DNA of 64,000 bases. Source: Perna viridis (taxonomy: Eukaryota). The stretch spans positions 33,542,001 to 33,606,000 of the forward strand of contig CM074512.1 in the NCBI GenBank assembly GCA_037379345.1. The letters are read 5' to 3'. Positions 637 through 64,000 of this stretch are shown here, piece after piece. The notes beneath the pieces are model-generated. The model saw nothing but the letters and a program-made list of their open reading frames with translations, was not told the DNA's origin and searched no databases. A program made the position numbers and the translations under genes. Numbering within the stretch: the stretch's first letter is position 1; each line of letters opens with the position of its first letter.

Positions 637-35793
<35,157 letters not shown>

Positions 35794-35826
35794 GTAAGTT
35801 TCCCCCTCTTTCATAGAGGTAATATT

Positions 35827-36495
35827 CAGTCGAACTTCACTCGTTCAAACTTGGATGGCTCGCATACCCGGGATTTTTCGAACACAACTCAAAGTACCAA
35901 ACTTTTCTCCTATATAATCAACATAAATAACCTTGGATTTCTCAAACTTCAAATTCTCGAACACTTGAACTAACTAGTTGGTCCACTCAGTAATAAATCT
36001 TAGAATATAACCCTCCGCTAACTGGAACTTGTCAGCCATTTTGTCAGCTTGGATAATAAAAAGTGTGAAAAACTGAAAAACTATCATTATTCAGTGTCAT
36101 TTTAGTTACTTACAGGTAATATTTAAGTTATGATCACTAATTAGGTAGTTTTAATCTAACATAGTACTGATTGTACCAAAATTGGCATGATGAAAGCATA
36201 AAAGAAAATTTAATGTCAACAAATTATTGATGAGGGAACTCGAACTCTGAATTTTTTTAAGAGCAAACACAGCATTTTTAATGTCAGCAAATCAACATAA
36301 CCTTCTGAAAGTGACTGGAAAATATCCAAGACCTAACAATACTTTGTAGGAAGTAAGTAATTTCTAACGAATAAGTTGAACTCGGATTGGCAACGAAAAA
36401 AATCCGGAAATTTACTAACTTCAATTTCTCGAACTCCCGATAACTCAAACAAATATCAATGGCCCCTTGGAGTTCAAGATACCGATGTTTGACTG
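35827..36495. mobile_element. pogo/Tc1-mariner-like MITE, about 670 bp
   Basis: Imperfect TIR CAGTCGAACTTC / GATGTTTGACTG with repeated subterminal CTCGAAC motifs; superfamily is inferred. Confidence 0.55.
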
Positions 36496-36940
36496 CACTT
36501 TAAAAAAAATAGACACTTTTATGAATTAATTGTGATTTCAATCTCCAAAATCTCTAGAATTCCCACCACAACCTTCTTAGCTCACCTGGATCATTGGTAC
36601 CAGTGAATAATGCCTTTACTTTGGGTACACAATCCATTGCCTGTCATTTGGTTTCTATACAATTCTAACCTTTTTTATTTCCTGAATTAAAACCCCATTG
36701 ACTAATTCTACCAAACTTGGCAGGAAGGGTGTTTTGTGAAGCCTTTTTAAACATTCCACTTTTGATTCTTGGTCAATCAAACAACATGGCAACTTCAATC
36801 TATTAAAACTTCTGGTAGGCCAATTTTTATATGACTGTGAAAAAATTGTGGTTATATAATGGTAAGGCACTGTCATCATCCATGTCATTGTGTCATCTGT
36901 AGGCATATTTGTTAGTTAATCTTTATAAAAAGAAGGTTTA

Positions 36941-38203
36941 CAGGGAAATAGATTAACGGTCGCCCACTCGCCAATGCCGACCAGAAATGTGCCATTTTTT
37001 CTATTTTAATAGCCCAGCTGGCAAATTGCAAAAAAATTATTGTAAACAAAAGTTGTGGTCGGAGTTGTAACTGGTTATCATTCGATCGGAAACATAGCGT
37101 CCTTAGTTAAATTTTTATCGGTAACCAGTTCTAGTAATACGGTTCCTAACCGATGTCAGTTTCTTATTTAGAATTGTTTATTAATTTCCGCATCCGGAAT
37201 TTCGAAAAATGTGGAATTTTATTTCTGGGGTTAAAAAAACCCAAGAAACCAACACCACAGCCAAGAGAAAGACATACCAAAAAGAATATTAATAAAAAAT
37301 AAATCAGTTAAAAACCTGTCTTTAGCACCTGCTAAGCCTATTGTCATTAATGATGATAAGGGAAGAGGTTAAGTCTGAAGAGTTGGCTACTGAGAATGAG
37401 GAAGGGGGACAGGAAGAAGGAGAAAATGAGGCAGCAGGAGAGAGTCAGATAGAAGAAGAGATAGAGGTAGAGGTAGGAGAGAATCAGGAATAAAGGTAGA
37501 GGTGAGTGAGAAGCTAGGATGAAAGCGATTATGAGTCAACAATAATCTTTATTCTCAAAAACCACATATTTGGTACAGAGACACATAACATATATAAAAT
37601 ATATGCTATACAAAACTATTTACAGACAAGTTGGAAACATTACAGTATTGATGAAGTTAATCAGACATGTCAGAGTGTGATAGCGATTTAGAAAAGGATT
37701 CTGTTTTTGCAAGATTGTTTGAATATTCTAGAGATTAATTTGTTCAGAATCTGAATAAAAATTAATCTCTAGGATATTCAAACAGTCTACTGTTTTATGT
37801 ATTAAAGTTTTGAATTTATATGAATTGGTTGTATAATTTTAATTCACTGAAAGAGATATATTATCCAAAGCACATTTTTAACTTCCAACTGCACATTTTA
37901 GAGTTTTCATGATGCATATAAATAGGGAGACTATGTAGTGAATGAGTGAATGTGTATGACAACAAATCACACCATACACTGAAAATTATCAAGGAACAGA
38001 GCTTTTATTCCTGTTCTGCATCTTGATGTTGCATGAGGGTCTTTAACAATGAACAAATGGTTCATACCCTCAAACAAGTATTTTTACGTACCAAAATTTT
38101 GTCAGAAAAAGTCTGGGCTACTAACTTTTTTTCTGGGCAAATTGATTTTATACTTAAGTAGCCCAGGTGGCTAGTGGCCTCAAAAAGTTAATCTTTACCC
38201 CTG
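36941..38203 (+). mobile_element. Internally deleted hAT-like DNA transposon, about 1.26 kb
   Basis: TIR CAGGGAAATAGATTAAC / GTTAATCTTTACCCCTG; CpG-rich left subterminal region; decayed coding-like remnant (MWNFISGVKKT...KRKTYQKEY, then an acidic E-rich stretch at 37370-37490); target-site duplication only partial. Confidence 0.6.
37712..37788. repeat. 77-bp near-perfect palindrome (foldback)
   Basis: AGATTGTTTGAATATTCTAGAGATTAATTT ... AAATTAATCTCTAGGATATTCAAACAGTCT. Confidence 0.85.
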
Positions 38204-41200
38204 GTTTATATTAATTTTAGGGGTTGATATTGGGGGCTAATACTTGAGGAATTATGGCATTAGGGTCTGAAAGAAGCACTTTTCTGGTTTGTTAATTGGA
38301 AAGGCTTTTTAGTGCGCCTGATTTTTCATTTTCAAATTTAATGAAAGACAGGAGATTGACAGTTTCAGCAAAACTGTTTTTTTTTGTTTTTTTTGATTAA
38401 CAGTGTATAATTTGTAATTTTTTGGAAGACATGGAATTCACCTGTATTATTGTCAGTTATGACTCATATTTAGGATTATATGCACCAAATTTCACCAAGT
38501 AATTGAGTTTTCTAAGAATTGTCATCTTGTCATTTCATTGTCAAGCCTTCTGGGTTTACAAACCTATAGTATACATTAGTTGTTTATCAGTAGCCAGTGT
38601 TATTTAATTATTGCTAATTACAGTAGTGATTATCATGCTGTGCTGTCTACAATAACAGAAATCTAAGGGAGAATGAAAGAACTTCGGCTTAATACATGTC
38701 ATAGATTCTGAAACGAACATTAGGACTCTGACCACTGGCTGACACCAGTGTTTAAAGACTTTTGTTGACAGATTTTGACATCCACAACAGAACACTGCTG
38801 CTAATGAGATATTGTAAACTCTTTACTGCTTAAAGAAAATAAAGTTAATGGAGTTTTTATGGTGGCACCCTTTTAAAAGTCATTAGATTTTTATAATATC
38901 TAAACTATAAATGATAAATAAATAAGCTATCATTTTTATTTTATTATTATTATTATCTGACCTTGTTGTTTTTAACAAAGTCTCATTACTTTGAGTGTCT
39001 TTGCTATGGTGATTTCATTTCTTTATTCTTTTTTATGCCCCACTCTTAAGAGTAGAAGCTATATTGCAATCACGTTGTAAGTCCTTCAGTCCATTCGTAA
39101 CACTTTTTATAACAGATTTCTTATCCTTTATTCGAGGGAATGCTTAGATATTTGGTATATTGCTTTGCAAGGTGACTTCTACTATGTCCCCCCTTTTCAG
39201 GCTCCATGCTTGTCTACTTCCTGTTCACAGATCGACTTAATAATTTTTCTGATGTTAAATTGTGGAAACTTTCATAACTGATTTTTCAGTTTCTATGAAG
39301 AGGAATGCTTAGATATTTGGTATATTGCTTTTGTGGGATGACATGTACTCTGACTCCCTTCCCCAGCTTTGACTGAAATGGTTGAGTTGGAGTATGCATA
39401 CTACGTCGTGTTCTCCTTTCAACTATGTACACTTATTGGTAGTTATGAATTTGGGGATGTACATTTAGTTTAAGGTATGGACTAGCATTTAGAAGGGAAT
39501 TCTATACATGTATTTCACAGTGTACTTGTGTCTTTAAACTATATTGGGATCAATTTTATTTATTGATTAGATAATAACTGACTTTCAAAGAAAAATGGAT
39601 CTTTTGGCAACCCAATCTCCTTATTTGTATCTTTTGCTTTATTGAATACCATATCAATGGCTGTTTTGTTCTTGAGTTACATTTGATGTATCTCTGCGTC
39701 ACGAAGCTTTGAAGGCGCCACTCTTGTCATGTCTGCTAAGCATATTTTTGTTTTACATTTGATAATCTTTGAACCCAATCATAGCTGCAATTATTCAATG
39801 TTTTTCCTTTCTTGGAATTGCTACTTGACAGTTTCCCCATAGAATTTGTCAATTTATTAATGGCAAGTGGATGGTTATAGCATTTTAAATGCAGTTAGAT
39901 TGCATGTGGATGACAGTCTGTCTACTTGATGAATGCCTGTAGGGATACAACTTAGTGCAGCTCTGTATTGCCACATGAAGAAAATTGTAAATGATTCTTT
40001 TATTTATTTATAATTATTATGGTATTAAGTTTGGGTATTTTTTAAACTTGTATACCTGTACACTACATTTGTACACTACATATGTACATGAGCAACATAC
40101 AGTTATAGTTATATGCCAGTGGCTTTCTGTATTACATTCTTAACATTTGAAGTCTTTAGATGTGTTGATATCCTTATGAACCATTATCAAGTTGTAGTAC
40201 TTGTGTGAAAAGGAGGACTGGTAGAAAAAGTAAGTGTATAAAAGTCCTTATGAAATGTAAATATATTTGATATAACTTCATGCTAATGCTCAAAATTACA
40301 AGATAAAAAAAGTTAATATATCTGGGATTTAAAATTTGAAATACAGGTACTAATAAGTATATTGGAGTTCTGAAATTGTACTGGCATCAGATGATTGAGA
40401 TTCAACCCAAGGCTTACATATAAAGCCTATTAAAAGACCCATGTAGAAAGAAATTTTCATGAGGTGCATTGAAATATGAAATGAAACTCGTAGAATTTTA
40501 ACCCAATATCTTTCCTGGACTGATTTATACTGATAATGATAATAACCATATCTATGTATTGTCTTGTGTCATTGGTAAATTGTTGTACATGAGTTAAGAT
40601 GACCCATGTAAGACAAGACAAGGTCATTGTATAATCCAATCAAAACAAAGACTGAGAAGACCTCAAAGGTGATTTATGATTTTGCTATGTAACATTGCAA
40701 TGATTGTTGTGGGAAATGGTGGAGATATTCTCTCTGTCTATAGACAAATTGCTGATAAAATGCAGCATTTTATACAAGAAATAAGTATATACACTCATTC
40801 CTAATGGAAGTCTGAGATTTTTAACACTAAAAGTAATATAACTTCATTGTCTTTTCAGTTGTTCCACTGTGCTTCACTTGTGCAAAAGTCTCAATTTTCT
40901 CAACACTCTTGTAAAGAATCAATTAAAAATCTATTACTTTTTTCAAAATATTTATCTCAGAGATTGATTCATTATAAAGTCTACATTTTATAACTACACA
41001 ATCATTGCTTTACAATTTTAGAAATTTTATGCTTCCCACAAGAAACCACAGCATGAAAATTAACTTTCTTGCAACATAACTGACTAATGTAACTTTGCCT
41101 GGGATGAATTTCACTTGCCATGGGTAAGAGAAATGGGGGTTCTAAACTCTGCAATTGTTATAATTTCATTGAACTATGAAAAGTGGTTACCATAAATAAA

Positions 41201-42480
41201 TTATTCTACTCTATACCCAAAAAATTCTACATTTCATTGTGCATAATCAGTATGACAGTTACCTATGGAAGCCAGTGGTTCAAAGAAAGAACCTTAATTC
41301 CCTTTTGCTGTAAAGCTAACAGTCATATAGCACCAATTAGTTCTAAAAAATATATTAAGCACACAATTATTTTGCCTTTAGGAGATCTCCTGATATAGAG
41401 ATCAATATGGAACAAAGTGCAGAATGGGAAAATTGCTCGCAGCTCTTCAATTTTCCAATTAATAAACAAAAGATGTTTTAAGTACAGAAACAGCAGTCTT
41501 TAATAGTTTATGTCATTTCCTGTAATTATTAGTTTAGTAAATTATAGTAAAACTAAGCTGTCTGTGAGATGAGGCCACTGTCCTAGGGAAGACAATGCCT
41601 TAGATTCAGGAGACACATCCATGATATTGTTAGCTTATTTTAGAACTACCTCATTCTTTTATTATAGCAATCACCCTATAATGATCTCTCTGTCTGTTTG
41701 TATGTCCTTCCATTACAAACTCCTGTTGGGGCTTTAACTGTTTTGTCTTTGGATATTGGTTTATTTTATTTTGGGTGGAGGTAAATCACCTGAAAATGAT
41801 GTGTGGTGTACAATGGATAGTGACCTAAGACCATGAAATTTGATTACACTATCAAATTCTGTTTTTTCATTGACTAACTCCTGTGTAGGCTGTAACTTTT
41901 TTTGTCTTTTGATTTGGGCTTTGAATATTTGGAATGTGGGTAGATCACCTGAAGACAATGTATTATGGATAATTGTCTAGAACCTTGAACTTTCACCTCA
42001 AGGTCGAGTTCATGTTTTTTCAGTGACAAACTTGTGTCTGGAATATATTTGATTTTATACTTCTTTCTCAACTGGTAAATATTCCTATTGAATATGAGTA
42101 CCACATTAAAAACTGAAAATTTTGAATTTCACCTACAATTGGACCCTAAAATCCCTTTAAGGTATTTAAGTGGTAAGTATAAGAAAAAAATTTATTGACT
42201 CATTCCCTTTTTATAATCTAGTTTACTATGCCATCAGATAAAAAGTCCTTTCTTGCTCAGAAGTATTCTTGAATGGCATTGACAGTTTCATCAGAACCAG
42301 AATCTGTAATTTTCCCTGGGGACCACCAAGCTCTCATTTTAATAGTCCTGTCACATATTTGTGACTCTCTTACATAGATGAATGTATATTCCCACAGGAA
42401 GTCTTAAATTTATCCTTTATAGATATAATATATCAGTTGGAGGGATTTTTATGCTGGAAGTTTCTACATCTCCTATTGTA

Positions 42481-43620
42481 AGCTCACCTGGCTAAAGGCC
42501 AAGTGAATTTATGCCATCACTTGGCTTCTGTCGTCATCATCATCGTGGACAAATTTTTGAAAATCCTCTAAAACTACTTGACCGACAGGATGTTAACTTG
42601 GTATGATTGTTCCTTAGAGTATTGTGCACAATATGACTTTTGGGATTTATAATCCTTGAAAAACCATGGCCGCATTACTAAATATAGAACATAGGAGTCT
42701 GAAGGCATTTTTTTGCAAATAACTAAAAAAATATTGCCTTTAGCAAAATTCTGGCAGTTGGTAATATTGTTCAGCATCAAGAGATGGACCTATGCCAAAC
42801 TTTTCAAAATGATTTGTCTACTGATGTAGGAGTTATGGCCCCTGAAACAGCTTTTTTTTGCATTTTTCCCCATGTACAACTTTGAAAATCCTCTTCTCAG
42901 AAATCATTTTACAGAATTTGATGAAAGTTGGCCTATCTGTTCCTTGAGATATTCCACACCAAAGTGTTGTTGGGATTTTCGATCCATGAAAAGACATGGC
43001 CCCTGTTACTAAAAATAGAACATAGGGGTCAGAAGGTCGTTTTTTGCAAATAACTCAAAAGTTGTTGCTTTTTGCAAAATTCTGGCAGGGTGATATTGTT
43101 CAGCATTATGAGTTGGACCTATGCTGAAATTTTCAGAAATTAACAGCCCCTGAATTAGAACATAGGGGTCAGACATTAGTTTTTCACATATATCTCCAAA
43201 ACCATTAGGTTTAGCTAAATTCTGACATGGATGAACGTGTTCAGCATGATGAGATCTATCTGTGATGAAATTTTCATTTTATTCTGTATAGCCATGGAGT
43301 TATTGCCCTTTTTCAATGTTATTTATTTCAAAAATCTTCTCCTCTGATATCACTTGACCAATTGGAACCAAACTTGGTGTGATTGTTCCTTGGTGTATCA
43401 TGCATAGAACTACTGTGGAGATTTTTTTTTTGTTTTGTCAAAAACATGGCTGCTGTTACTAAAAATTGAATAAAGGGGTCAGTCAGTTGCTGAAATGATC
43501 CTTATGATAAGGCCTACAAAAGTTTGTGGGGATCAAATTTTTTGGATAACTCCTTGTTAGAGTTATTGCCCTTGAAAGGCAAAAAATTATGTTTTTAGCA
43601 GTTTTCAGCCTATATCTTGA
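42481..43620 (+). mobile_element. Helentron-associated (HINE-like) element with internal tandem monomers
   Basis: 5' AGCTCACCTGG...GTGA...GCCATCACTTGGC plus (GTC/ATC)n; repeated CATGGC...TTACTAAA.ATAGAA...AGGGGTCAG and GGAGTTAT.GCCC blocks; architecture typical of bivalve HINEs (recalled). Confidence 0.6.
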
Positions 43621-46529
43621 GAAAAAAACATAAACTGGACTAAAACTAAGATATCTTTCTGGTAGTATTGTTATGTTTTACTTTATGACATCATGTTTTC
43701 TCCTTCTCTTGGGTAATCTCATTTAAAATTCCATATAAGATGTTATACACACAACTTGATGGGTGTTGTTACAAAAACAGGAGATTGGATTCTTGTGATG
43801 TATCTTTCCACCAATAAATGAAAATTTACAATTTGAAATCAAATCATTGATGAGCCTGGTCGTTGAGAATGATGGCCAGAGTCACAAAATGAAAGTACAT
43901 TTACTACATATGAATGAAATGATAACAAATTTCCTTGTCATTCATTCATAAAGATATTTATTATAATTTCTATGTTTTTCATTTAGACAGCAACAGTTGT
44001 TGTGATTGTTTATTCTATCTCTCTAAACCATAAAATGTTATATAAGTTTTGATAACTGCTTTATCTTCCTTGAGTAATAGGTAATTTAAGAAACCATTTC
44101 CTCTAAAAGTCACAAATTTTGATAAATGTTGTAAATGAATAGTTTCATTATTACTTGTAGACAACAGCACAATATTATGTAACAAGAAAATTGAAATCAA
44201 ACAATTTTGATAATTAATTTAATTAGCTTGCAAGTAATTTCGACATAGTTCAATTGATTATCGAAAATAACTATTTTCATTTTCAATTTTGCTGTTTATT
44301 AGTTTTTGTTTTGTATTTTGTCTTAAAAGTATTTTGGTTACAAAACATATTGAGCATAAAAGTCTGCATAATAATGTGTACTTTTGAATAATATCAGCGG
44401 TAATATCCTCATCAATAATTGTTCATTTATTTGTCTGTCGTAGTTTTTTATAGAAATGATCAATTTAATACATAAAGGAAGGAAGGAATTAAAAATAGTA
44501 AAAATATTCACAAAGTAAACCCTTGAATTGATCGATAAGGAGATGCAAAATGCAATGGTATTAAAAATTGCTCATGTTGACTTCAAAACTTTGTACTGAA
44601 ATCTAATTTACATGTCCACAAAAGGCCTCAGTAATGACATTGACGTCAAGATATGAGATTCTCATTTAAGTTAACTTATAATCATGACTTTTGAGAATAT
44701 GTGAATGAACAAGGTTAATAGTGTTACTGTTGGAGATGTAGCAAAACAATCTGTTTACATAGGTCTTGGTGCTTTGAGCTATTACTCCCTTTTAATGAAA
44801 ATGGCTGATTTGTTGATGATGCTGTTTCATTAATATTTCACTCTCAAGTGACACACCTTTAGAGGACTTTGACCTGTCCTGATTTATTTATGTAATTGAA
44901 TGTGATTATTTGTGCTTAGACTGTTCCCCTGTCTAGACAATCATCTTCATCTGGTCCTTTAGTTATGTAATTGTTAGGTAATGAAAATGCTGTAATGGCA
45001 CATGTTGAATACAAATGGTGTAATAACTTAACTTTGAATCTTCTGTTGTCAGTTCTTCCCTTGTCACCATTTTAAAGAGTGGTATGACTTTTGTTGAGTA
45101 AATCTAGTTATGTAATTTGTGTATTGTTATCTATAGGATTGACTTGTTCTTAAAGCTAGGGATTAGATTTGTAAGAAGTTGTTGTGGTATTGATATTGTA
45201 CTTAATGATGAGCTATGCAAGAGATCATTGCAATAATTATAGTACACATTATATCTTACTATTTCTTAACAACAGTTTTTTCTATTGTATCAGAATTTTC
45301 CTTCTGGTAATATATTAAGTGCTAATCCAAATGCTTTTATTAGCATTCCTTAGTTTTTATTTGAAAAAAAAAAATATTAGTCCACTAGATTTTCTTGCGA
45401 AATCGAATTTCAAAAGCATGCCAGAAGTGTATGTAACTAATTAAAACTATGAGTTTACCAAAGTTTGAACAAAAATTGCATCATTATCTTACAAATTTTT
45501 GTTTTTTGTTGGTTTTCAAGAAGCCTACCACAAAATATTGGCTCATCACACATTGATGGCCTGATCTAGCCTTATACATTCTGTATGCTTTCATTGGTAG
45601 CATGTGTATTAATATTATGCTTAAACTGTTAGCATATTATGTCCTTGTTTTGCTCAATCTTGATAATGCTGATTAAATTGGTGATAAAGTTGTGGTAGAG
45701 AAACCAGCTTATTAAATGGATATGATTTTCAGTTTTCTGTTTTTACAAATCTGGATGTTTACAATTTGATTCTTTATTTTACTGTTTACTTCCAGTTTTG
45801 CCCAAATTCACATATCTGTTTTTATCTCATATATGGTTATTAGCTAAGTATGGGATGAAAATATAAACACAAGTCAAACAAATATTCAACCTAGGCATAC
45901 CAGTTTAGTCTAGTCCAGACTAGGTTTTAGAGTATGCCGTTCTGTTAGTAATTTATGATGAATATCTTATTTCCAGTTCTCCTTAAAAGAAATCAGGCAG
46001 TGAAATAAACACCTGATCCACTAAACCTGTAAAAAATTCTCTCATTTTTTTTTACAGAAACATGGAATAAATTTACCAAGTTATTACTTATACAGACTGA
46101 TATTTTTAATAGCACCTATTAATTTATTTTGGGTATGCATTTAACTGAAAGCCATGATTTATTCATTTGTAATGATTTTTACCTTACACTACTATGACAA
46201 CCAAGATCTGTAGGGGAGTAATGTGGGGTTCTTTCTTCTCTCCTCCTTAAATCAAACTTCCTGATTGACTGATTGAAACACAAAAGAATGTGTTTCACCA
46301 ACTTGACTCTTTTACCCTGTCCCCTAATCCCCATTCTTAAACCCCTTATTTACACTTTCCCTGTCTGTACTCCTTGGCTCCTGAACTCCTTGATGTGTTC
46401 CACTCTCCCTGTCCACTTTCCCTGCTTTATCAGTGACTACAATGGTCTTTTATTGTGAATTTTAATGTTCAAATTTCTATTTGTCTACTTGTATTTTATA
46501 CAAGTGTCAAATTTCTTGAAGAGTTTGAA

Positions 46530-46878
46530 TTGGTTTCCATGACAAAGATCAGACATGGATAACAGACAAAAACAACAAAGAACTTAAAAAAATCGAAATA
46601 ATACATACAAAGTAATGAAAGTAAATGAGCAACTCAGACTCCACTTAAAATTAGGAGCATGGACCAGGTGCAATTGTAGGATAAGCATCCTCTGCTTTTC
46701 TAGAAATACCCGCCAAGTTGCTAAAAAAAAAAGTCAAGTCCGGTGTAGACGAAAGGGGAAAGGAAAACTATGACACATTGAACAAATCAGTTTTCATGGT
46801 GTAGATGGATACATTGTAACGATCCACAAGTTCAGGATGACGACCATAAAACTTCTGTAGTGATGACTTTAATCTTGT
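46530..46878 (-). mobile_element. 5'-truncated retroelement: last 36 codons of a reverse-transcriptase ORF plus 3' UTR
   Basis: Minus strand 46878-46768 translates TRLKSSLQKFYGRHPELVDRYNVSIYTMKTDLFNVS*, resembling the LKSSLRKFYGRHHDLVDRY C-terminus I recall from mollusc RT elements; UTR shared with 17888-18132. Confidence 0.7.
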
Positions 46879-47046
46879 ACTATCTGAACTCTGTTGAAAG
46901 TATACAGTCATTTTTGCTGGTCAAATTAATCATTTAGACTATGTACACTCTTCTGTAGTTCTATTGAGCTAGGTTCTGAGCATCAATTGCTCGGTCTCAG
47001 ATTTACTGTAAACTATATGAATTCAGTACACAATGGAAATCCTGAA

Positions 47047-47110
47047 GATTGATTGATTGTTGGGGTTTAACACCCGAGCAGCAATATTTCAGCTATATTC
47101 AGGCGAGAAA
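47047..47110 (-). mobile_element. SINE/LINE 3' tail fragment ending in (CAAT)n
   Basis: Reverse complement TTCTCGCCTGAATATAGCTGAAATATTGCTGCTCGGGTGTTAAACCCCAACAATCAATCAATC; a decayed similar tail at about 32970-33020. Confidence 0.45.
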
Positions 47111-49834: not shown

Positions 49835-49995
49835 TCCAAGCTGTAACTGGCTCATATTGATGTAATGTTTTTTTTTTTGTATTTTGTATCTGTCTAAGCT
49901 GTAACTGGCTCTTGTTGATTTAATATTTCTTTGTATTTTGTATCTGTCATAGCTGTAACTGGCTCATGTTGATGTAATGTTTTTTTTTGTATTCT
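49835..49995. repeat. Three ~55-bp tandem copies (AGCTGTAACTGGCTC.T.TTGAT.TAAT.TTT...GTATT)
   Basis: Read directly; more decayed copies at about 49580 and 49640. Confidence 0.75.
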
Positions 49996-50083
49996 GCTTG
50001 AGGTATTATACTTTTCCATAGCCATGTTCTAGCTTTGCAGATTGCCTATACCTGTTTCTGTTTATTGCTTACTGCAGGACCAA

Positions 50084-51082
50084 GGCTTCAGCTATACAGA
50101 TTGCCTGAGCTTAGGATACTGTACTCCACTTGACTGAGGCTCCAGCTATACAGATTGCCTAAGCTTAGGGTACTGTACTCCACTTGACTGAGGCTCCAGC
50201 TATGCAGATTACCTAAACCTCCGTTTATTTTTCCCACTTGACTGAGGTTCCAGCTATGCAGATTGCCTAAGCTAAGGGTATTGTACTCCACTTGACTGAG
50301 GTTCCAGCTATGCAGATTGCCTAAGCTAAGGGAATTATACTCCACTTCACTGAGGCTCCAGCTATACAGATTGCCTAAGCCTCCGTTTATTTTTCCCCCT
50401 TTACTGAGGTTCCAGCTATGCACATTGCCTAAGCTAAGGGTATTGTACTCCACTTGACTGAGGCTCCAATGATACAGATTACCTAAGCCTTGGTTTATTT
50501 CCCCACTTGACTGAGGCTCCAGCTATACAAATTGCCTAGGCTAAGGGTACTGTACTCAACTTGACTGAGGCTTCAGCTATACAGATTGCCTAAGCCTCGG
50601 TTATTTTCCCCATTTGACTGAGGCACCAGCTATACAGATTGCCTAAGCCTCGGTTATTTTCCTCATTTGACTGAGGCACCAGCTATACAGATTGCCTAAG
50701 TTTGGGTTATTTTCCCCATTTGACTGAGGTTCCAGCTATGCAGATTGCCTTAGAGGTTCCAGCTATGCAGATTGCCTAAGCTAAAGGTATTGTACTCCAC
50801 TTGACTGAGGCTCCAACGATACAGATTACCTAAGCCTCAGTTATTTTCCTCATTTGACTGAGGCACCAGCTATACAGATTGCCTAAGTTTGGGTTATTTT
50901 CCCCATTTGACTGAGGCTTCAGCTATACAGATTGCCTAAGCCTCGGGTTATTTTCCTCATTTGACTGAGGCACCAGCTATACAGATTGCCTAAGTTTGGG
51001 TTATTTTCCCCATTTGACTGAGGCTCCAGCTATACAGACTGCCTAAGTTTAGGGTATTGTATTCCACTTGACTCTGGCTCCA
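50084..51082. repeat. Minisatellite, ~52-54-bp unit, roughly 19 copies, two interleaved subtypes
   Basis: Constant CCAGCTATRCAGATTGCCTAAG ... CAYTTGACTGAGG, with a middle of either CTAAGGGTATTGTACTC or CCTCGGTTATTTTCC. Confidence 0.95.
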
Positions 51083-52454: not shown

Positions 52455-52685
52455 CCCTCTCTTTTCGTGCCCTGTGCAGGTCTGGGTGTCAAAAGAATAG
52501 GCCTGCAGCAGCGCTAAGCTTGTTGTAAAAGACGACTAAATAGTGCTCAGGCTATAATATGGAAAACCTGACCGCAAACCATAGTGGTGCCCATGTTGGG
52601 AAAGATGTCACGTTCCTCGCACGTTAAAGAACACTGCTGTGGTATTCGATAGGAGTAGGACCTTTCCGCTCCGCCACAGGAGGCT
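52455..52685 (+). mobile_element. GC-richer interspersed repeat, probable SINE fragment (Nin/Deu-like domain possible)
   Basis: CTTGTTGTAAAAGACGACTAAA and CACGTTAAAGAAC resemble conserved invertebrate SINE domains as recalled; single copy in the window. Confidence 0.3.
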
Positions 52686-55600
52686 AAATTGCCTGACCTT
52701 ACCCTTTTGTATGCATTTGAAGATGATTGACATGAAGTATGGGCCTATTGCATGATTCTTGTAAGAACTTTTACTGATGATCCTCTCTTTACCTTCTGAT
52801 ACTGGCAATGTTATGACACCCCACAATGAAAGTCTGAACTAGCAAAATAGATATATTTGATATACAAAATTGGCCTTTTATATTTTGTTTTGCTAATGTT
52901 GGATAAACATCAATTTGCTGGTGTGGACTACTAGGGTTACGGAGGACTGTTAGCATGTTATAGCTGACATCCAGTTACCGATGTGTAATGATTCTTTTAT
53001 TATTTACTGTGTTATATAACGAGACTGGATATGGTGAATATGTCAAAGAGACAACAACCCCACTTAGATGAAAAATGTAAGCAGAAATTTTTTTTAAAAA
53101 AATGGTGTGATGTCTTGTTTATTCTGTCTAGTCTTTCTCCCTAGGTCATCAATATTGCAGTCTGCTTTAACTCCAATGTGCATAATATTCCTTTTATAAT
53201 TTCATCATTTCTTTTAAATATAAGCATGCAATCAATACTTATTGTGTGGAGTAACCTTCAAGCTTCAAAAGTGTACGAAATGAGAGCCTCCAGTGTTTCA
53301 CACTCATAATGTTCTGTTTACCTCCATGTCATTTTCATCACTCAATCAGGCATAAATCATACCATCTCTCTAGAATTTCCTATTCAATGCTTTAAAAATT
53401 ATTACCTTTATGATAAATATCATATAAAGCCTATTTATGTGTTCCCATATTGTTTATAATTAAAACAGTCTACCAGTTCCATGTATTGAATTGGTAATTG
53501 ATTCTCTGGAGCAGATGATATTTTTGTAAGAGGACAGATGGACTTTTATAAATTCTGGAAAATATTCCTATTATGACTTTTAATGTTCTTTTTTGAACAT
53601 TTCCTTAATTCCCCCTGCTAAAGTATAAGGGAGGATCACTTGTTTTTACTGATTGTCATACAAATTTACTCTACCCAATATTTATTTTATTAGTTTTAAT
53701 TTATATTCTATTCATTAGAATGATTTGAAATTTAGAATGTAGCTTCTGGGTGGTAAGTCTTTAATTGCATTTGTAAATTTTGTTACAGTCACATATCAAA
53801 TTTTGTTAATTGGGCATGTTTTATTTTTAATTTCCCTTTGGACACATCTTCTATTCTAAAAACATGTTCACCTGAGAATCAGGCAAAGGATTATAAGGAC
53901 ATATTTTAATAAATTACTTAATAATGTAAATGCATTTAGTTTTTCTCATTAGCATTTGAAAACCAATGAAGGTTTGGAAAGCATGAACAAACATTACTGC
54001 TTGTATAGTAGTATATGCATTTATCAGCAATTTGTCCATTTTTCCTTTGATATTTTTCATATCTTTTGTACTGATTGAATTGCAAAAAAATCAAGCAAAT
54101 CAATGGTGAGGCAATAATCCCATTGATTTGATTGTCCAATGAAAAGGGCAGTTTATGGGTGAAGTAATCAAAGTCACCCATTTCTATAAATCTATGGGAA
54201 ATGACACAATGCAGGAATGGAGCTGAAACACACTACAAAAAACTTCTGCATTAAAATATTAGTGCATATAAAAATAGTGGAAAAAACATGTTTTTTGACA
54301 AAATTTGAATTCTGGATAAACAGAATAATAGTTACATTTTTGAATACTGACTCTTCAGGCCCTTCTAAGATATTCACATGAATAGTCAGTATCAAACATG
54401 AAGTAACTATTATTCTATATATAGGGAACTGGAAACTGATTTTCCATAGCATTCATCTAAATCATTACTTGCCTTTAGCCACTGGTCCGAAGCCTGGGGC
54501 TAGTGAAATGATGTGAACATTTCTTGTTTCGGGCTAGTTGAATCCTGTACAGTCCTCTATTATTCGGACAAGTCATTGAGAGTTTTGAAGGAAAGGACTG
54601 CAATCTAAACTCTTTTTAACAAATGAATTACTCTTCCTACATCAGATATAAATTTTGTTGATATTTTTATCATTGATGTGAGGTTTTAGGTTGTAATGAA
54701 AGTTGGATTTATCACTCCTTTCATTAGTTGCATGATTCTAAGACGAAACTTTTCCTAATACAGTATAAATCGCATCACAAGGCTTTTGATATTTTGCTTT
54801 ATTTACCATATTCTATAATTGTAAATGGTTAGAGGGTTTCAGAACACAAGTCTTTGAAAGAAAAGAAACCCATTTTAATGGAAAGAAGAATATAAAGGAA
54901 GCCGTAAATGGCTTTGGAATAAGCATAATTCCTAATAAACCCGAAGCCAATGACCAATATTAAGGTTTGCCTTAGATCATATATGACCATGAGAGTAGAT
55001 TTTTTTTTATTAATATTAGAATCTCTTTACACAATTTATTTTTCTTACAAGACTGTTTCTGTCATCTTATTGACAAAGAAATTGTTTCCCTTACAAACAT
55101 ATGCTTTTTGACATTTATGACTTTTAAGGAATTTCAAATAGAAGTAATATTGAATGATTTGCTTAACTCTTAATGGCTTTGTGAACTTTCTGAAGTGTGG
55201 CCAATTTCAATATGTTTTATTGGCTAAAACTTAAATAAAGCAAGACTAAATTAGGATTCTGTCTTTTTTTGGTAAGAATCCAATAATACAATGTTTTTGA
55301 CTATTTTGAAGTGTAATGTTTCCATTCTGAAGAGCTCAAATAACTGGAGGCGTAAATGTTATCAATGAAATGAGACTGATCTCCAATTTCTGTTTCTTAT
55401 TATTAGATTCTCAGTGCAGATGAAGAATAATATTGTTGCAGGATAATTTTCATTGAGGAAAAATGGAGTAAAATGAAATACTTACAAGCAGAGTTGTAAT
55501 TTTCTTCAGATTAACTGATAAACACTTTTCTTTGAGGAAATGTTTTAATTAATTGGTTGAAAATATTAGAAAGTCAAACTTTTATGGGTCTTTAAGGGTT

Positions 55601-58344
55601 CCCCCATTTCTTTTAATGTGTTTGTTCATACCAAGTTTTGATGGTAATAAAGCAATGAAAAAATATTTCAGGAAAGTTTATTAAGCAGGGATTGAATTTT
55701 CTGCATCTTTGCAGAATTCTGCTTTTCATTTTCAGATCAGGATTTTACTATTTGATTTGTCCTTTTTCATTGTAAGCACAGCTGCTTCTAAATGATTTGA
55801 TGGAATTTGATAAAACTTTATCTAGATTGTACACCTTATGATGTGTATGACTTATTTGACTTATTTCCATTTTTCCATGAGGAGAATTGAGCCATTTACA
55901 AGTCTTCTCCTTTGCCCATCTGTTTGCATCTGTCTATGAGTGAAATCCCAGATCTTTCCTTTCTCGTTTTATAGTTCTCCATCATGTTTTCTTTGGTCTC
56001 ACTCTTTTTATTTTTCCTTCTGGTGTCCAGGTAAGCAATAGTTTTGTGTGTTTAGTATTTTCCATTCATATGATGTGTATAAAGCAAGATAAACACTGTT
56101 TATACTTGTAGTTAGAGTCTCACATTCCTCATTTTAAATATGTCTATAGATTTTCTAACACTGTGGTTGTAATCAAGAAATAACTCATACAAGATTAATT
56201 TTATTGTTGTATAAACATGGTGGCATTATTTTAATGACTCAGTGATAATTTTGTTGATAATTTATCCACTGTTTCAATGGGATGAGTAGATATGAATGAC
56301 TATTTTGCTGCTGCTGTAAAAAACGTCAATCACCTCTGAATTACTTCTTTTCTGAAAGAACAATTTTAAGCCATTTATGTTTCACACCTCTACAATTCAT
56401 CTAAAGGTGGAAGGGGGGGGGTGTTGATGACATCAGTCCCTATAAGTTATTTCCTTCTTCAGTTGTATTTTATTTGATGTGACATACTTAAACCTTAATG
56501 TGTCAAAGTTGCTTTGGTTTAGTCTCAATACTTGATATATTTTAGGATAGTAAATGTGGACTTTGTCAATCTTTGATTAAAAACAACCATTGGTTTGGGG
56601 ATTGTTTTACATCTAATTGTTTAGACATCCATATATAGTTTTCAGTTGGTGGTTAAGTTTCTTATTTTTATAGCATTTTTCTCATAAAATACAGTGGTGT
56701 ATTAATTTTAAAGCTTTTTAGGTTATTTGAATTCGTGGATTTGTAACAAATAAATGTTTTTTCAATCTTAATTTGCCAAGAATATTTTTTCTAAAAAAGT
56801 CTTGAATATATTTGTGTGTCTTATTTTACTGTATATATCGCTATACTTTTGATTTTTTTTTCAATTTCCACTTGGTTTGTTGGACATGTAGAATCATATT
56901 TCTAAAAAGCAGAAAGCTCAGACAATTATGGACAGTAATTTAAATATGCTTAAAGGCACAACTGTGTTTTCATGTAAAATCTGCCTAATAACTAAGGAGA
57001 GAAAAAAAAAAGATTAAAAGTATTGAAAGGTCATTTCTAAAGTGAACAGTGGTTTTGTTTTGTTTTTTTTTTGCTATTTTACTCAAAGTTTATATATATA
57101 TAACAAAAAATCTTATGGTCAGTTATGAAATGATTTTCCTAGAGATAATATTCAGTTGACATGAGGTTTATTTTTAGTTTAATTTATAGAATAAAGAAAC
57201 CAGACAATGTCACAAATTTACAGAGAAATCATCGATCATTCTATATTTCCTCATTATTGAAAGCTTTCAAAGCTCTAAGGCTGTTTTTTTGTGAAGACCT
57301 TGTCTGGCTTCTTTTAATGCAATGTTACAAGTATTTGTCTGGTGGAAACACAAGTCAGTAATTACTACAATTACCTTGTAACATATCCATTGATCATATG
57401 CTATTTGTTGAAATATTTTATTTTGGATATTTTTTTCGGTTGTTAGTTTTTTCGCTTACAATTTGACTAATATATGTCTTTAAATTGACATGTTTCTAAC
57501 TTAATATGATAATTTGTTTCATGCCCCACCAACAAATTGATGGCTTAAATATTTTGGTCTTTGCATGCTTCTAAATTTTTGTCATTTGTTTGTTTTTTTT
57601 TGTATAAGCTTGTATAAAGTCTGTAGCAAATGAATATTGGTTCAATTCACCATAAGGCTTATTATGGTGTGTACATTTAGAAATATATTGAAACCCAACA
57701 GTCCAGTTTAAAACCCTAGGGATGAATGATTTTGTTTTGGAAGGAATTTTATTCACATAGCATCATGATTGATGGAGACTTCAGAATATGTAGACCTGTT
57801 TTTGACAAGTTATTTGCTTACTGTGGGTTAAATCTTGCCAGGTTTATTTGTATACGCCAGTAAGGTTTTGACCAAAGCTATTCTTGCATTCCCAGCATGC
57901 TATTTTTTTTTTGTCGTAGACAGAATATTGAAGCATGAGAACAAGTTCCTGAATTAGTTCGTTTTTTTTCTTTTTTTTTTTTTGTAAAATGGACACTCTT
58001 AACTTGGTAAATTAAAACCATCTAATATGTGTAAGTTATAGACTGTTCAAATTAGCAACTGCTAACCTAACTTTCCTTTTGAATGGTTTCGTGAATGATA
58101 TAACTCCATGTCACATTATCAAAAACCGAAATGATGAATTTTTGGAGATATCGAATTAGTGGTGTTATCTTGATTAAGGATTCTTTGGCATTGACATTTT
58201 AGTTCTTTATGCCAATCCTGCTAGCCAGCTGTTTTGATACACTCAGTATAAACATTCTAAAAATAAATAAATTAGTTTTAATTCTTTGGTAAAATTTGTA
58301 ACAGATATGAATAAACTGAAGCGCTAGAAAAAATTCTTCTAGTA

Positions 58345-60200
58345 TCACCGAACTTCATCTTTGATTAGAACAGTTACTGTGTTTCTACGATCATTTGTAG
58401 CATTATGCGATGTTGGTAAACTTGCTGTATAAATATCTGATCGTATGTGTCCCTTAGTACACAAATGACATTTGAGAATCCTGATAAATGCACGACGGAA
58501 TGCAGTATTGAACATAGTGTAAATTATAGGGTTGGCCAAAGAGGCTATATAACCCATCCAAAGAAATATAGACATCATATCGGGTGTAATGTTATCCATG
58601 CATGAGGGGCAAAACCCAGACATAATGTTTACAAAGAAAAATGGTGTCCATAATACAACAAATACTCCAAATATTATTCCTAGTACTTTAGAAGCTTTTT
58701 TCTCATTGGATGTTGCTTTTCTTGACATGGCACGTTTGGCCTCTTGAGCTTTGTTAAACTTGTGGAGAAGACTCTTGATGCTTTTATTGACCTCTGGCCT
58801 TTCAGTCGTTGATGCTATAGATTCATTAGATTTTGCAGCTTCATAACCTTTCTGACAAAAGCCATTGGCATGTCTCTTTGGAGACTTTGTAAGAAGTGGA
58901 CTTGTCACACTCTGAACAGTTGTGGTCAGTTTATACATATGGAATGACTGTGGGCGTAGTTTGATTGTTAGAAACTCAGAACCTGATGAAGATGACTCGT
59001 CAAGTGAATCCTCTGATTCTGAAACTACTTTTGATGTCGGTAAGCTCAATAGATTTGGTGCACCACTATCTTCAGATGACAGTTTGTGGAGCTTAATATC
59101 TGAAAGTGAATCCTTAATTTTGTTCACTCTGGTTTCTGACACAGAATCGGACATTTTGTTGAACTTAATGTCAAAGTCTTGAAGTCTGTGAAGTTTTAGG
59201 TCTGAGAGTGAATCTGGATATCTGTTTATTTTAATATCAGAGAATGAGTCTGGAATACTTTTTCTGTCCTCTTTTTCACTGTCTCTTAGTATTTGATCCA
59301 TTTCTTGTTGAATTTGAAAGTAGTTTAGTTTCCAACCAGCTGTTTTGACATCCAGATTACCACAAGAGTGAAACATTATATTTTTTCTTGCACCTAAGAA
59401 AGGTGTGTCTGAATCAATAAAGGTGCTCGAAGAAGCCCCTAAGATATTTTTACCTTTTGAGATATTTTCTACAGAATTCACTCTAAGGAAATCTGTGGAC
59501 CTCTCATGAGGTTTTAGATATTTTGGATAAGAACTTGTTGGTAGACACGAGAAGGAAGAAGCCTTCCTCCTTTCCCAGTTATGTTTTTTTCTAGGAACTT
59601 TTTTGTACACTAACTTTTCAGAATACAAGTGATCCTTTTGTGGAAGCACAGGAACTGAGGCAAGAACAGTGTTTTCGGTGTCACTTTCTAATTGTTCAAT
59701 GCTGTGACGACGTGACCCCTCATCACTAGGAGGAGAAAGAAATGCTTTGAATGACTTTTTCTTTTGGGCTTTTTTCTGTTTGAATTTTAAGTCAGATCTC
59801 TCAATTCTTTGCATATTCAACTGATTTTTCCATAAAATCCTTATTGTAAGTACATAGGTCACTAACATTATAACTAAAGGAATGTAGAAGGCAAATACTG
59901 AGCCATAGATCACAAAATCCTCGATTGCAGGGGCACATAACCCATCATTCAGTATATAGTCACTATCCTGAATACCATAAATGCACAAAGGACTACTAAT
60001 TGTTATGGAAACAGCCCATACAAAGAATATCTTCAGCACTACCATCATTTTTGTCTTGTTTCGTCCATATCTCATCGGATATTTCAGTGTGAAATAACGA
60101 TCCATTGACATAGTACACATGTGCCATATGGAGGCTGTACACATGAGGACATCCATACTGACCCAGAACATACACAACTCAGGACCAAATGGAAACTTTC
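58345..60200 (-). CDS. HTR2: 5-HT2-type serotonin receptor (class A aminergic GPCR), terminal coding exon covering ECL1/TM3-TM7 and the C-tail; the N-terminal TM1-TM2 exon(s) were not found in the window
   Basis: ORF 58345-60177 extends to a minus-strand acceptor (ctattttcag|GAAAGTTTCCA at 60200, phase 1), reading (G)KFPFGPELCMFW. Motifs: D3.32 in DVLMCTASIWH, DRY, TM5 GSVFAFYIPL, NEKKASKVLGIIF, WTPFF, WMGYIASLANPIIYTMFN and helix 8 FRRAF, all characteristic of 5-HT2 receptors. The ORF-track 'M' is an internal TTG codon. Confidence 0.92.
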
Positions 60201-63200
60201 CTGAAAATAGAAAGAAGAATAGAAAATGCTTGCTGTGTTATACATTATTTGACATAGCCTTTTTTGTCCTTGAAATAGCTTGGCACATGCTCCAGATAAA
60301 CTTTGTAAATTTGAATTGTAAATATAGAACATGATGTTTCTGTGGTAATTAGAATAACCTTCCTTAGCCTTTACTGTGTAGTGAGCATCAATACTGACTT
60401 GAGATTTTGATTAAGAAATTCTAACAAGATATTTCTATCATCTTGATAAATTGAGGGATTTCCATAAATTAGAGCTCTGATTGTTTTTTTGGACCATGAC
60501 ATTTTCATGGTTCAATGTTGTTAATGTCAGTGATGTCATGACATTGTCTTCAGATATTATATAATATCTGGCCTTACCAGCAGAATGGCAAGTGGTCTAT
60601 TGGTTTGAAATTCAAAAAATGAACAAATTATAGTCTAGCAAATTCAATGTACATTTTACATCTTAAGATAACTGTGGTTGAGATTTCTGTTCTTTGTTTC
60701 CAGTGAAATAGGAATAATAAAAGCTGTCCATATAATCAACAGTTTGTGATCTGAATCGAATATTTATTAAATATTTCTATGAATGAGCCACTCCAGTTTA
60801 TGAATGGCTGATTTTTTTCGATGAATAGTTTGCCAAAGTATTTTCTGATCTGATGAACCTAAAACAAATATGGCAGGGGAAATGCAATATAATATATAAT
60901 CATGTGTCATTATTCAGACCCTTTCTTTTTTTATTTAACAAGGCTCCACTAGTGTCAGTACCATCCTATTCTGTCACGTTTCCCATTTACTTAATGGTCA
61001 TTTATATACAGAGTAACAGTGTTATTTAAGTAAAGCTTCTGTCTAACAGCGATGATCTGAATCCTGCTGTTTGTAATTATTTAAAAGATTTGTTCATGGA
61101 CGTGTCTAGCATGTCAATATGTTGATGCTTGGGAGAAAAGTGAAATTCAGCCCGCTATGTATTTGGTGCCAGTGGAATGAGTTGTAGAGTCTCAAAGACA
61201 AATAGTTATTGGTACAAAGAAATGAATTCACAGAGTTGGTCATCTAATGATTGTCTCAAAATTGGACCAAGGAACCAGTCAAGATTTAGCTGAAAATAGA
61301 AACTAGTAGACACTAATAGAATGTAAAATTCCTATAAAAGAGAATATTGTTTGTGGTAAAGATCCTTTAGCTGACCATAATGGTTAGTTATCTTACTCTT
61401 TATTAGCGTTAATTAAGTAATGTTCATCTTGTAAAATTGTATTTCACTATATCCTCTTTGACATTCATTTATTTATTGATCATTGAGGTACCTTGGAGTC
61501 ATGTTTACCAATGCATAATACAAATGTACTTACATTAAGACAAAAGACAAAAAAAACAAAAACAAATAAACATGGTATTAGTTCGCAGTTTTTCTGTAGA
61601 TGGCTTTCAATTCTTTGATCAGTTTGAAATATTGCTTTGTGAACTCAATAATTGTTAGAAATATGTTATGATGACTGACTTAACTATATTGATAATTTGT
61701 GCAGCAGGTTGTCATATGTATATACGCAGAGTGCACTAGCTACATGCTGTTTACATTTACCATGATTAAAATTTCAAGGTGATTGTCAAAGCCACACTAA
61801 AGCAGATCTCAATAATGATTTCACTTTTACAAAAATCATACTGATGGTATATTGACTATGCTGCACCCACAATGAGCTCAAATTTACATTTTGTTGTATC
61901 CCATGCCTCCAACCCAAACAATTATCTCTGTTTGTCCATCCATTTGTTTTTGTGTCTGCCATTGGTAATTTATGAACAGAACTTTTCTAAAAATCACTGT
62001 AGGAGTTTATCAAAATGTTGTATACTATAAGTAAAGTATATTATAGCAAAAGAAAATGAAAGTTAAAATAAAAGATTTTGAGGTAGTTAAAAACATTCAT
62101 TTTTTTCCTTTAGAATAATTCTTTCCGCTATATTAAAGTCAAATTCTTAGAAAATTTGAAATTGTTCCCTTTCTAAAATCATTGTTAATGACTTGCTGAA
62201 CTATCTAATGCTGTTGAAGATCAGTAATCTGTTTAATGTTAAATATATTTTGGTTCCACTCCTCAATTTCTCATTTCCATAATATTTTCTGAATACTTTA
62301 TGAGTTGCTTAAAATTTATGCTCTGAAGATGTATTTTTAATTTGAGTACGGTATTAATATTAAGCTATGAGCTTTTTTTTTCATTAAAATTTCAATAAAA
62401 ATTTATGATTAATAACTTTCTAATTGAGTTTTAGATTATGCTCTCATTTTGCATAATCACACTTCAATATTCATGATTATTAAAGTTCCCATATTGGTCA
62501 GGAATAAAAAAAAAATGTAGAGTTGTGGTTTGCTTTCACCAATTCCTTCATACAGACTCTCTCAGGAGTAATTTTGTTCTTTTATATAATCATATTATCA
62601 CCACAGTAAGGATTGCCCATTGAAAAGCGTAATAAAAGGATAATAGATATTGAAATTCTGTTGTAATTAGCTTGGTAAATAAGCATTTGTGTTAGTGGGT
62701 ACAAGGTTTGGCAAGATTGTAGGTGGCTTTGGTAATGGAGGTTTCTAGAATCACAATATCCAACTGTCTGACATTTGTCATTTTGATGAAATGATATCAT
62801 ATTTAGAAATAGCAGTGATTTACAAATTGCATGTTGCAATGTCGCAGTGATGTAAAACCAATATGGTTCTAAATTGTCCATTTTAGATTGTAGCCACGTC
62901 ACAAATGTAAGAAGGCAGATAAAACTGTCATTTTTAGAATTTGGACACGTCACTGGTAATATAATTGAACATGTAAATCACGATTTTATTGTTTTTGATT
63001 ATTTTACATAATATGATTTTCTAATCGTATTGAGCATGATTCATAGTCTCAATTGATGATGGCAATTACTGGCTTGAATTTTATATTAGGATAGCTCTGG
63101 GTTTTACAAACACGGGATCATAATCCAATCTACTTTAACTTGTAAATCTAAGTCTTATCACTGCTTGGTTAATTAGTTTATTAAGGGAAAGTGGCATGTA

Positions 63201-64000
63201 TTAACATCCCTGATTTTGGTTTGGTTAGGTCAGGGTTTTTATCTTGTCATCTTGTTTGAGCCTTATATAAGGCTTTAGAATAGTCAATTTTGGTGAAAAT
63301 TATAGTCAAACACCAGTAGTCATTAAGTTAGATAGAGAAATTAAGGTTGATAATTGAAGCTTCAATAAATATTCTCATTTGGCAGAGATTAATAGTCTCT
63401 GTAATATGGAATTTTGAAAAATGAAGAAAATTGATACTCTAAAATTGAGGTACCTTCTTTAAGTGTACTGTTGTGAAGAATGTCCTCTTGAAAAAGAATA
63501 TATTATAGAAAAAATAGAGAAAAGAATTCTTATTATCCAATTTAGGGCCATCAAGAGGCATGAACATATATAACCAATTAAAAATTTGACATTAACATTA
63601 ACATCATACACATGTACATATTTAAACCATAAAAAACTTTTCTTTTTTAGGTAAGTGGTGTATTTTTGTTCTTTTGTTGTTCTTGGTTTGGTAAGTAACT
63701 GTTTCACTTATGATTATTTCCATTGAAAAAAACTGTGAACTTCTAACGTCCAGTGATAAATAACTGCATTTTCAAATAAATATGTCAGTGCCAAAAAGTA
63801 TTAAACCATGAAAGTTTTGAATCATCTGCCAACTTTACCAACTCTAGTTAAGAACAAATCTTTTTAATGATTTTGATTGATTGATTAGCAATTGGAAGTT
63901 TTGCCCTTAGTTTTGCCTATTTATCAGTTTTTTTGCACTTTATTTCCAAAAGACTACAAAAATATTCCAGCTATTAAGAGTTTATTGTCACTTTGATGGG

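Follow-up and report, generated by a model that had tools for sequence, protein, structure and literature searches.

It is common annotation knowledge that in human and other vertebrates HTR2B, the gene for a type 2 serotonin (5-HT2) receptor, lies within PSMD1. PSMD1 (Rpn2) is an essential, single-copy, housekeeping subunit of the proteasome. Here we examine a 64,000-nucleotide stretch of the Perna viridis genome (the window; C2:33542001-33606000, + strand) and the DNA around it, where one PSMD1 intron (35794-134856) encloses two intact two-exon receptor genes, R1 and R2, both on the minus strand. We put the probability at about 85% that the nest of 5-HT2 genes in PSMD1 is a host-guest locus that was inherited from the bilaterian ancestor, held mainly by lock-in (described below), and lost several times.

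Another nest of this type is synapsin/TIMP, whose conservation extends over animals as distant as cnidarians, Drosophila, and human (PMC2825198, citing Pohar et al. 1999). The likenesses to PSMD1/5-HT2 are that an unrelated, reverse-oriented guest sits in a host intron, that its position is conserved across protostomes and deuterostomes, and that the nest was lost in some lineages while the guest was tandemly multiplied in others (PMC2825198). The gene families are different, and synapsin is a neuronal host, in contrast to a proteasome subunit that is needed ubiquitously. Because PSMD1 is not neuronal, co-expression is a less obvious explanation for its nest than for synapsin/TIMP. More generally, pairs of unrelated genes that have been linked since early metazoans are described as ancient microsyntenic pairs, with cis-regulatory constraint as the proposed cause, in the main text of Irimia et al. 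2012 (PMC3514665); that main text mentions neither PSMD1 nor HTR2.

To compare the mussel locus with the vertebrate one, we used the pigeon Patagioenas fasciata and not human. The two loci share the host, the same phase-2 intron, the antisense orientation of the guest, and the receptor subfamily. The pigeon intron is 28.5 kb long and holds one guest, whereas the mussel intron is 99 kb long and holds two paralogs. Also, the vertebrate receptor has two coding introns, while the mussel receptors have the first only and lack the second (in transmembrane segment 4, TM4), and the third intracellular loop of R1 is very long. We considered extended synteny with ARMC9, the neighbor of vertebrate PSMD1, and rejected it: in Perna, ARMC9 is on contig C12.

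The Perna viridis assembly comprises 723 Mb in 46 contigs. We extended the window by 120 kb of flanking DNA from the same contig, and positions past 64000 are coordinates of this extended window. The main features are:

637..35793, + strand: PSMD1 (26S proteasome subunit Rpn2) coding exons, about amino acids 68-644, seen by tblastn as ~17 collinear high-scoring segment pairs
35156..35371, + strand: PSMD1 exon ending ...LLHVA, with a phase 0 end; phmmer matches to PSMD1 proteins with E down to 1e-57
35729..35793, + strand: last PSMD1 exon before the host intron, ending in LGFLLF plus the AG of an Arg codon; donor AG|gtaagt, read directly
35794..134856 (extended), + strand: PSMD1 host intron, 99,063 bp, from tblastn and exon ends; its first 28.2 kb, 35794..64000, are in the window
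58345..60200, - strand: R1 exon 2 (TM3 to the C-terminus, with the long third intracellular loop; stop included), from the open reading frame and Pfam 7tm_1
74103-73842 (extended), - strand: R1 exon 1 (Met to TM2, 262 nt); donor TATG|gtaggt
101076-99944 (extended), - strand: R2 exon 2, from exon search and splice sites
118402-118072 (extended), - strand: R2 exon 1, from exon search and splice sites

The host is the ortholog of PSMD1/Rpn2. Its exons are collinear with full-length PSMD1 proteins by tblastn, including PSMD1 from Mytilus galloprovincialis, to which they are ~72-100% identical, and a Pfam search found the RPN2_C domain in + strand exons at C2:33685571 and C2:33687310. (The Pfam search for PC_rep, PF01851, gave no match in the Perna genome; it gave none in the control genomes either, so this is uninformative.) The first three exons are up to 3 kb ahead of the window and the remaining ones are at extended 134857-147810. 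The gene ends near extended 147.8 kb, spans ~151 kb of the + strand, and has ~24 introns.

Because the exon at 35729-35793 ends with AG|gtaagt inside an Arg codon, the host intron is in phase 2. The next PSMD1 exon begins with ag|A ACT CCT GAA CAA (R-TPEQ) at extended 134857 (C2:33676857), as identified by tblastn with PSMD1 proteins. We deduce the splicing of PSMD1 across 99 kb not from reads but from the collinear exons and the orthologous protein of Mytilus. Within the intron, the long open frames are the two receptor exons and frames from tandem repeats, and nothing else.

With both exons, R1 spans 58345-74103 and R2 spans 99944-118402, and the predicted proteins have 705 and 487 amino acids. 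R1 exon 2 has its acceptor (ttttcag|GA) at 60200 and its stop codon at 58345-58347. It belongs to an open frame at 58345-60237 of 610-630 amino acids that matches Pfam 7tm_1 with E = 2.9e-44; a frame of this length is far beyond chance in DNA with 33% GC. R1 is 77-80% identical to a protein from Mytilus galloprovincialis, and R2 is 81% identical to a Mytilus protein. Together with the values for the PSMD1 exons, these identities point to a mytilid-like bivalve outside Mytilus. Separately, we rejected a supposed third receptor at C2:33659962-33660282, which is R2 exon 1 read through into its intron.

Is R1 a functioning gene? Four public RNA runs of this organism, from three studies, gave contigs that cover 58311-60201, which corresponds to R1 exon 2 only. 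These contigs stop at 60200/60201, and their loose ends, when reverse-complemented, are the last 30 bases of R1 exon 1. They therefore derive from spliced R1 transcripts, with exons 1 and 2 joined over 13.6 kb. R1 is a transcribed, spliced gene.

These observations also bear on the idea that the nest is an artefact of assembly or annotation, or that the receptor is a dead gene copy. The joined 184-kb stretch (window plus flanks) does not contain a single N, and Mytilus, Pecten, and Babylonia, assembled independently, show the same arrangement. The frames of both R1 and R2 are intact and their splice sites canonical, and R1 is spliced in RNA from three studies. We found nothing in favor of an artefact or a dead copy, and its chance seems negligible to us.

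An earlier note on the window, made from its sequence alone, had anticipated much of this. It had PSMD1 stopping in phase 2 at 35793, with no TPEQ exon in 35794-64000, and indeed the next exon lies past both receptor genes. The antisense receptor exon that it placed at 60200-58345 is exact to the base. It called for a search for the TM1-TM2 exon beyond the window, and this is R1 exon 1 at extended 74103-73842. It took the DNA to be from a mollusc and not a vertebrate, which agrees with the identity of R1 to the Mytilus protein. It described a single nested receptor, however; R1 is nested as described, but Perna, the scallop, and the gastropod discussed below each carry two nested genes, not one.

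We then asked to which class of receptor the guests belong. R1 contains ...SMDVL..., SMDRY, WTPFF, and NPIIY, and so has the amine-binding Asp of TM3, the DRY motif, and the NPxxY motif. The corresponding motifs of R2 are ...TADVF..., SLERF, WAPFF, and NPIIY. In a search of solved structures, the top 29 distinct PDB sequences were all 5-HT2A, 5-HT2C, or 5-HT2B, for both R1 and R2. For R1, these 5-HT2 matches had E values from 4e-57 to 9e-47, followed by the dopamine receptor D2 at 9e-45. The next-best G protein-coupled receptor (GPCR) genes of the Perna genome have their best matches to 5-HT7, 5-HT1, or alpha2-adrenergic receptors.

We used six of these 5-HT1-, 5-HT7-, and alpha2-like Perna genes as the outgroup for a careful maximum-likelihood tree (41 rows, 415 columns, LG+C20), in which the rows for the Perna, starfish, and pigeon genes are single exons. 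The 5-HT2 clade takes in R1, R2, the starfish guest, pigeon HTR2B, a mammalian HTR2C, and insect 5-HT2, and is set apart from the six outgroup genes with 100/100 support; a quick tree on a larger set concurs. Within this clade, the R1 group contains sequences from bivalves, gastropods, octopus, Lingula, an annelid, nemerteans, and rotifers (100/99), while the R2 group contains mollusc, Lingula, Lineus, and insect receptors (94/92). Two receptors of the razor clam, Sc5-HT2-1 and Sc5-HT2-3, fall in the R2 group. Since the two groups extend across phyla, the R1/R2 duplication is old. It dates from the spiralian or protostome level and is most simply read as a tandem duplication inside the intron. 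The grouping of vertebrate 2B with 2C (100/99) is consistent with these being vertebrate-specific duplicates.

The gene structure of the guests agrees with this placement. A phase-1 intron lies 8 residues past the 'VMP' motif of TM2 in R1 (TATG|gt...ag|GA), R2, the starfish guest, and pigeon HTR2B. Because all four guests that we examined share this intron between TM2 and TM3, they are not retrocopies. Together, the tree, the matches to solved structures, and the shared phase-1 intron place the predicted R1 and R2 proteins in the 5-HT2 clade; for R1, this class had been proposed from the window alone.

Two other features of this receptor family are worth describing. First, TM3 of R2 ends in ERF, not DRY, and ERY or ERF is common to most of the mollusc orthologs of R2; the orthologs from oyster, octopus, Lineus, and Lingula retain DRY. 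Second, orthologs of R1 and R2 are named in databases as dopamine D2-like, tyramine/octopamine receptor-like, octopamine receptor-like, or 5-HT2A/2C-like. Automatic naming of this receptor family in molluscs cannot be relied on.

To see how widespread the nest is, we surveyed PSMD1 loci from other animals. Pigeon PSMD1 spans 67 kb and encloses a 463-amino-acid 7tm_1 gene on the opposite strand. The pigeon exon ends (LGFILF) AG|gtacag at L027:19223 and the next exon begins ag|G ACT CCT GAG CAG (R-TPEQ) at ~47783. The guest, at 29822-38282, is thus inside a phase-2 intron, which interrupts the same Arg codon as in the mussel. Its last exon matches human 5-HT2B structures with E = 4e-91, versus ~1e-47 for 2A and 2C.

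In the starfish Acanthaster planci (GCA_001949145.1 DF978556.1), tblastn identified a 5-HT2-like gene at L031:13028-15278 (minus strand) that is intact, has two exons, and carries DRY, NPFIY, and canonical splice sites. Its host intron is 14.5 kb long, in phase 2, between GFIMF+AG (9441) and TPEQ (23979), and includes a gap of 797 N at L031:19353-20149. The guest is missing from the called genes of this locus, so the annotation of the starfish genome has a gap here.

The remaining guests are known from annotation. In Mytilus galloprovincialis, the receptor is inside an antisense PC_rep/RPN2_C gene. PSMD1 of the scallop Pecten maximus (219 kb) contains two antisense 7tm_1 genes, of 838 and 568 amino acids, and the 838-amino-acid product has the same length and contig as the R1 ortholog P0007. 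PSMD1 of the gastropod Babylonia areolata (231 kb) also contains two (855 and 785 amino acids), of which the longer has the same length and contig as P0033. In both species, the guests follow the R1-then-R2 order along PSMD1, as in Perna. Finally, PSMD1 of the hemichordate Glandiceps talaboti (133 kb) contains one antisense 7tm_1 gene, of 562 amino acids. In total, the nest is present in four species of Mollusca and in one each of Vertebrata, Echinodermata, and Hemichordata (with a 7tm_1 guest), and the guest is antisense to PSMD1 in all seven.

Beyond these nests, protein tables place PSMD1 and 5-HT2 genes on one chromosome or scaffold in Argopecten, Ylistrum (a 1.2-Mb scaffold), Mactra, Patella vulgata, Lineus, and Tubulanus. 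Babylonia also has one more R1-like and one more R2-like gene (P0044 and P0461, both on a 40.9-Mb contig) that are off the PSMD1 chromosome. It looks as if the two receptors were duplicated together.

The host intron is homologous in mussel, pigeon, and starfish (TTC AG|gt ... ag|R ACT CCT GAR CAR), so that the same-intron placement has been read from DNA in three lineages: mollusc, echinoderm, and vertebrate. With the guest in the same intron and orientation in these three lineages, and inside PSMD1 elsewhere, one ancient nesting is the simplest explanation.

Alternatively, molluscs and deuterostomes could each have gained a 5-HT2 gene in this PSMD1 intron on their own, which would fit the patchy distribution of the nest (it is absent from amphioxus, Lineus, and Owenia). 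However, this would require that, in all three lineages that we read from DNA, a gene of one receptor subfamily landed in one and the same intron out of ~24, and on one and the same strand. The guests also retain their ancestral intron and so are not retrocopies, and repeated insertion of one gene into one intron is very improbable. Given the shared host, intron, phase, orientation, and guest subfamily, we do not consider independent insertion to be a reasonable explanation, and we give it only a slim chance.

The nest is not found everywhere. We found no receptor-like sequence anywhere in the PSMD1 loci of Branchiostoma (amphioxus), Lineus (a nemertean), or Owenia (an annelid), where the phase-2 intron is just ~0.2 kb, ~0.85 kb, and ~0.5 kb long, respectively. 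The exon end before this intron is identical in phase and codon in pigeon, starfish, amphioxus, Lineus, and Owenia. Thus, the nest is ancestral and not universal. The host intron is 14.5-99 kb long if occupied and 0.2-0.85 kb if empty; since it is large only where it is occupied, it is made up of the guests and their surroundings.

The R1 ortholog of Lingula anatina (821 amino acids, L032:1462-3927) is a single exon, without the TM2/TM3 intron of the mussel, starfish, and pigeon genes. It is near the end of its scaffold and no gene overlaps it, so it neither clearly supports nor clearly refutes the nest in this species. It is a possible retrocopy that escaped from the nest.

With the survey in hand, we return to what had been proposed from the window alone. 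The earlier note stated that the vertebrate intron interrupts the Arg codon of LGFILF/TPEQ in phase 2, and this holds in pigeon, with the guest that matches 5-HT2B. It proposed a pan-bilaterian nest that predates the split between protostomes and deuterostomes. The ancestral part of this stands, as mollusc, starfish, and pigeon use the same intron, while the universal part does not, given the empty introns of amphioxus, Lineus, and Owenia. It also proposed that HTR2B, and not HTR2A or HTR2C, keeps the ancestral 5-HT2 locus. This is correct in the sense that HTR2B is the vertebrate paralog that is still within PSMD1 and hence at the ancestral locus.

We propose that a 5-HT2 gene became nested once in the phase-2 intron of PSMD1, in the common ancestor of the bilaterians. 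A tandem duplication inside the intron, in an early protostome or spiralian, would then have given rise to R1 and R2, and the guests would later have escaped separately in amphioxus, a nemertean, and an annelid.

Why would the nest persist for so long? We favor passive lock-in as the main cause. A single inversion or translocation breakpoint within the intron would split PSMD1, which is essential and single-copy. The guest could leave only by two breaks within one intron or by a copy made elsewhere; the intronless gene of Lingula would fit the copy route. The large intron may be the guest's own regulatory territory.

Selection could instead keep the pair together, through a constraint of the kind that the earlier note suggested, either because the intron contains a shared regulatory block or because antisense transcription couples the expression of the proteasome and the 5-HT2 receptor, so that separation itself would be deleterious. 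The very long retention of the nest and the antisense orientation without exception could be explained in this way. So could the retention of both paralogs in the intron after duplication in molluscs, and the large size of the intron only when it is occupied. Yet nested genes usually lie antisense to their hosts. At least three lineages parted the genes and nevertheless kept both of them (Lineus, for example, has 5-HT2 genes), and the only transcript seen in the RNA contigs is that of the receptor itself, spliced. Passive lock-in, with an essential host, accounts for the data no less well than regulatory coupling does, and we consider selection for the pair to be unlikely. A specific functional linkage, in which the giant PSMD1 intron would be a conserved regulatory landscape for 5-HT2 and antisense transcription of the host would tune the expression of the receptor, or the reverse, strikes us as quite improbable. 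In that reading the nest might even be older than the Bilateria, if PSMD1 of cnidarians turns out to host an aminergic-like GPCR.

Several points weigh against an inherited, locked-in nest. Its absence from Branchiostoma, Lineus, and Owenia requires that it was lost several times independently. Reading at the sequence level covered a single vertebrate and a single echinoderm, and the sample of PSMD1 loci lies outside the Ecdysozoa and the Cnidaria. The guests of the hemichordate, the scallop, and the gastropod were placed in PSMD1 from annotation and not to the exact intron, and that of the hemichordate is known only as a 7tm_1 protein. In the tree, the branches within the 5-HT2 clade are weakly supported (88/74, 89/79), and the outgroup leaves out D2-like receptors (the next-best class by structure) as well as the vertebrate receptors outside of 5-HT2. 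Also, the case for lock-in comes from reasoning and not from measurement.

In and around PSMD1 we noticed other sequences. Frames that look like tandem peptide repeats occur on both strands at 33476-34800 and 50091-50522 of the window and at extended 96550-96987 (SLRDNQ..., LGNLYSWSLSEVEYN...). These frames in the PSMD1 introns are minisatellite arrays, not genes. Just upstream of PSMD1, at extended -8063 to -5830 (+ strand), open frames resemble parts of a retroelement integrase or RNase H (...HCERCLKRK...); this looks like a retrotransposon remnant. Finally, a second match to RPN2_C, at C2:49524725-49524937 (+ strand), lies 16 Mb from PSMD1, also on C2, and is interrupted by three stop codons. 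It is probably a fragment of a PSMD1 pseudogene.

Our literature search on the conservation of the nest found, within the library that could be searched, no paper that describes PSMD1/5-HT2 outside of vertebrates; the microsynteny hits concerned PSMD14 and Psmd11 instead. A survey of 5-HT receptors in the razor clam maps its three Sc5-HT2 genes to one chromosome, and does not mention introns, a proteasome gene, or nesting (PMC10603676). The conserved PSMD1/5-HT2 nest is a new, well-supported example of a type of arrangement that is already known from synapsin-TIMP.

The nest provides a positional anchor for the orthology of 5-HT2 receptors across the Bilateria, which is independent of sequence trees and of automatic names, both of them unreliable for these genes. 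It pinpoints HTR2B as the vertebrate paralog in the ancestral host, and it suggests that the two spiralian lineages of 5-HT2 receptors arose by tandem duplication inside the PSMD1 intron. The survey has also revealed an unannotated receptor gene in the starfish genome. Should the functional linkage be true, it would mean that the supply of proteasomes and serotonergic signaling have been coupled for half a billion years. More broadly, the nested pair has stayed at one intron for more than 500 million years, and there are natural 'escape' lineages as well. Together, the retained nest and the escape lineages offer a possible test of whether such pairs persist by selection or because of the cost of breaking an essential host.

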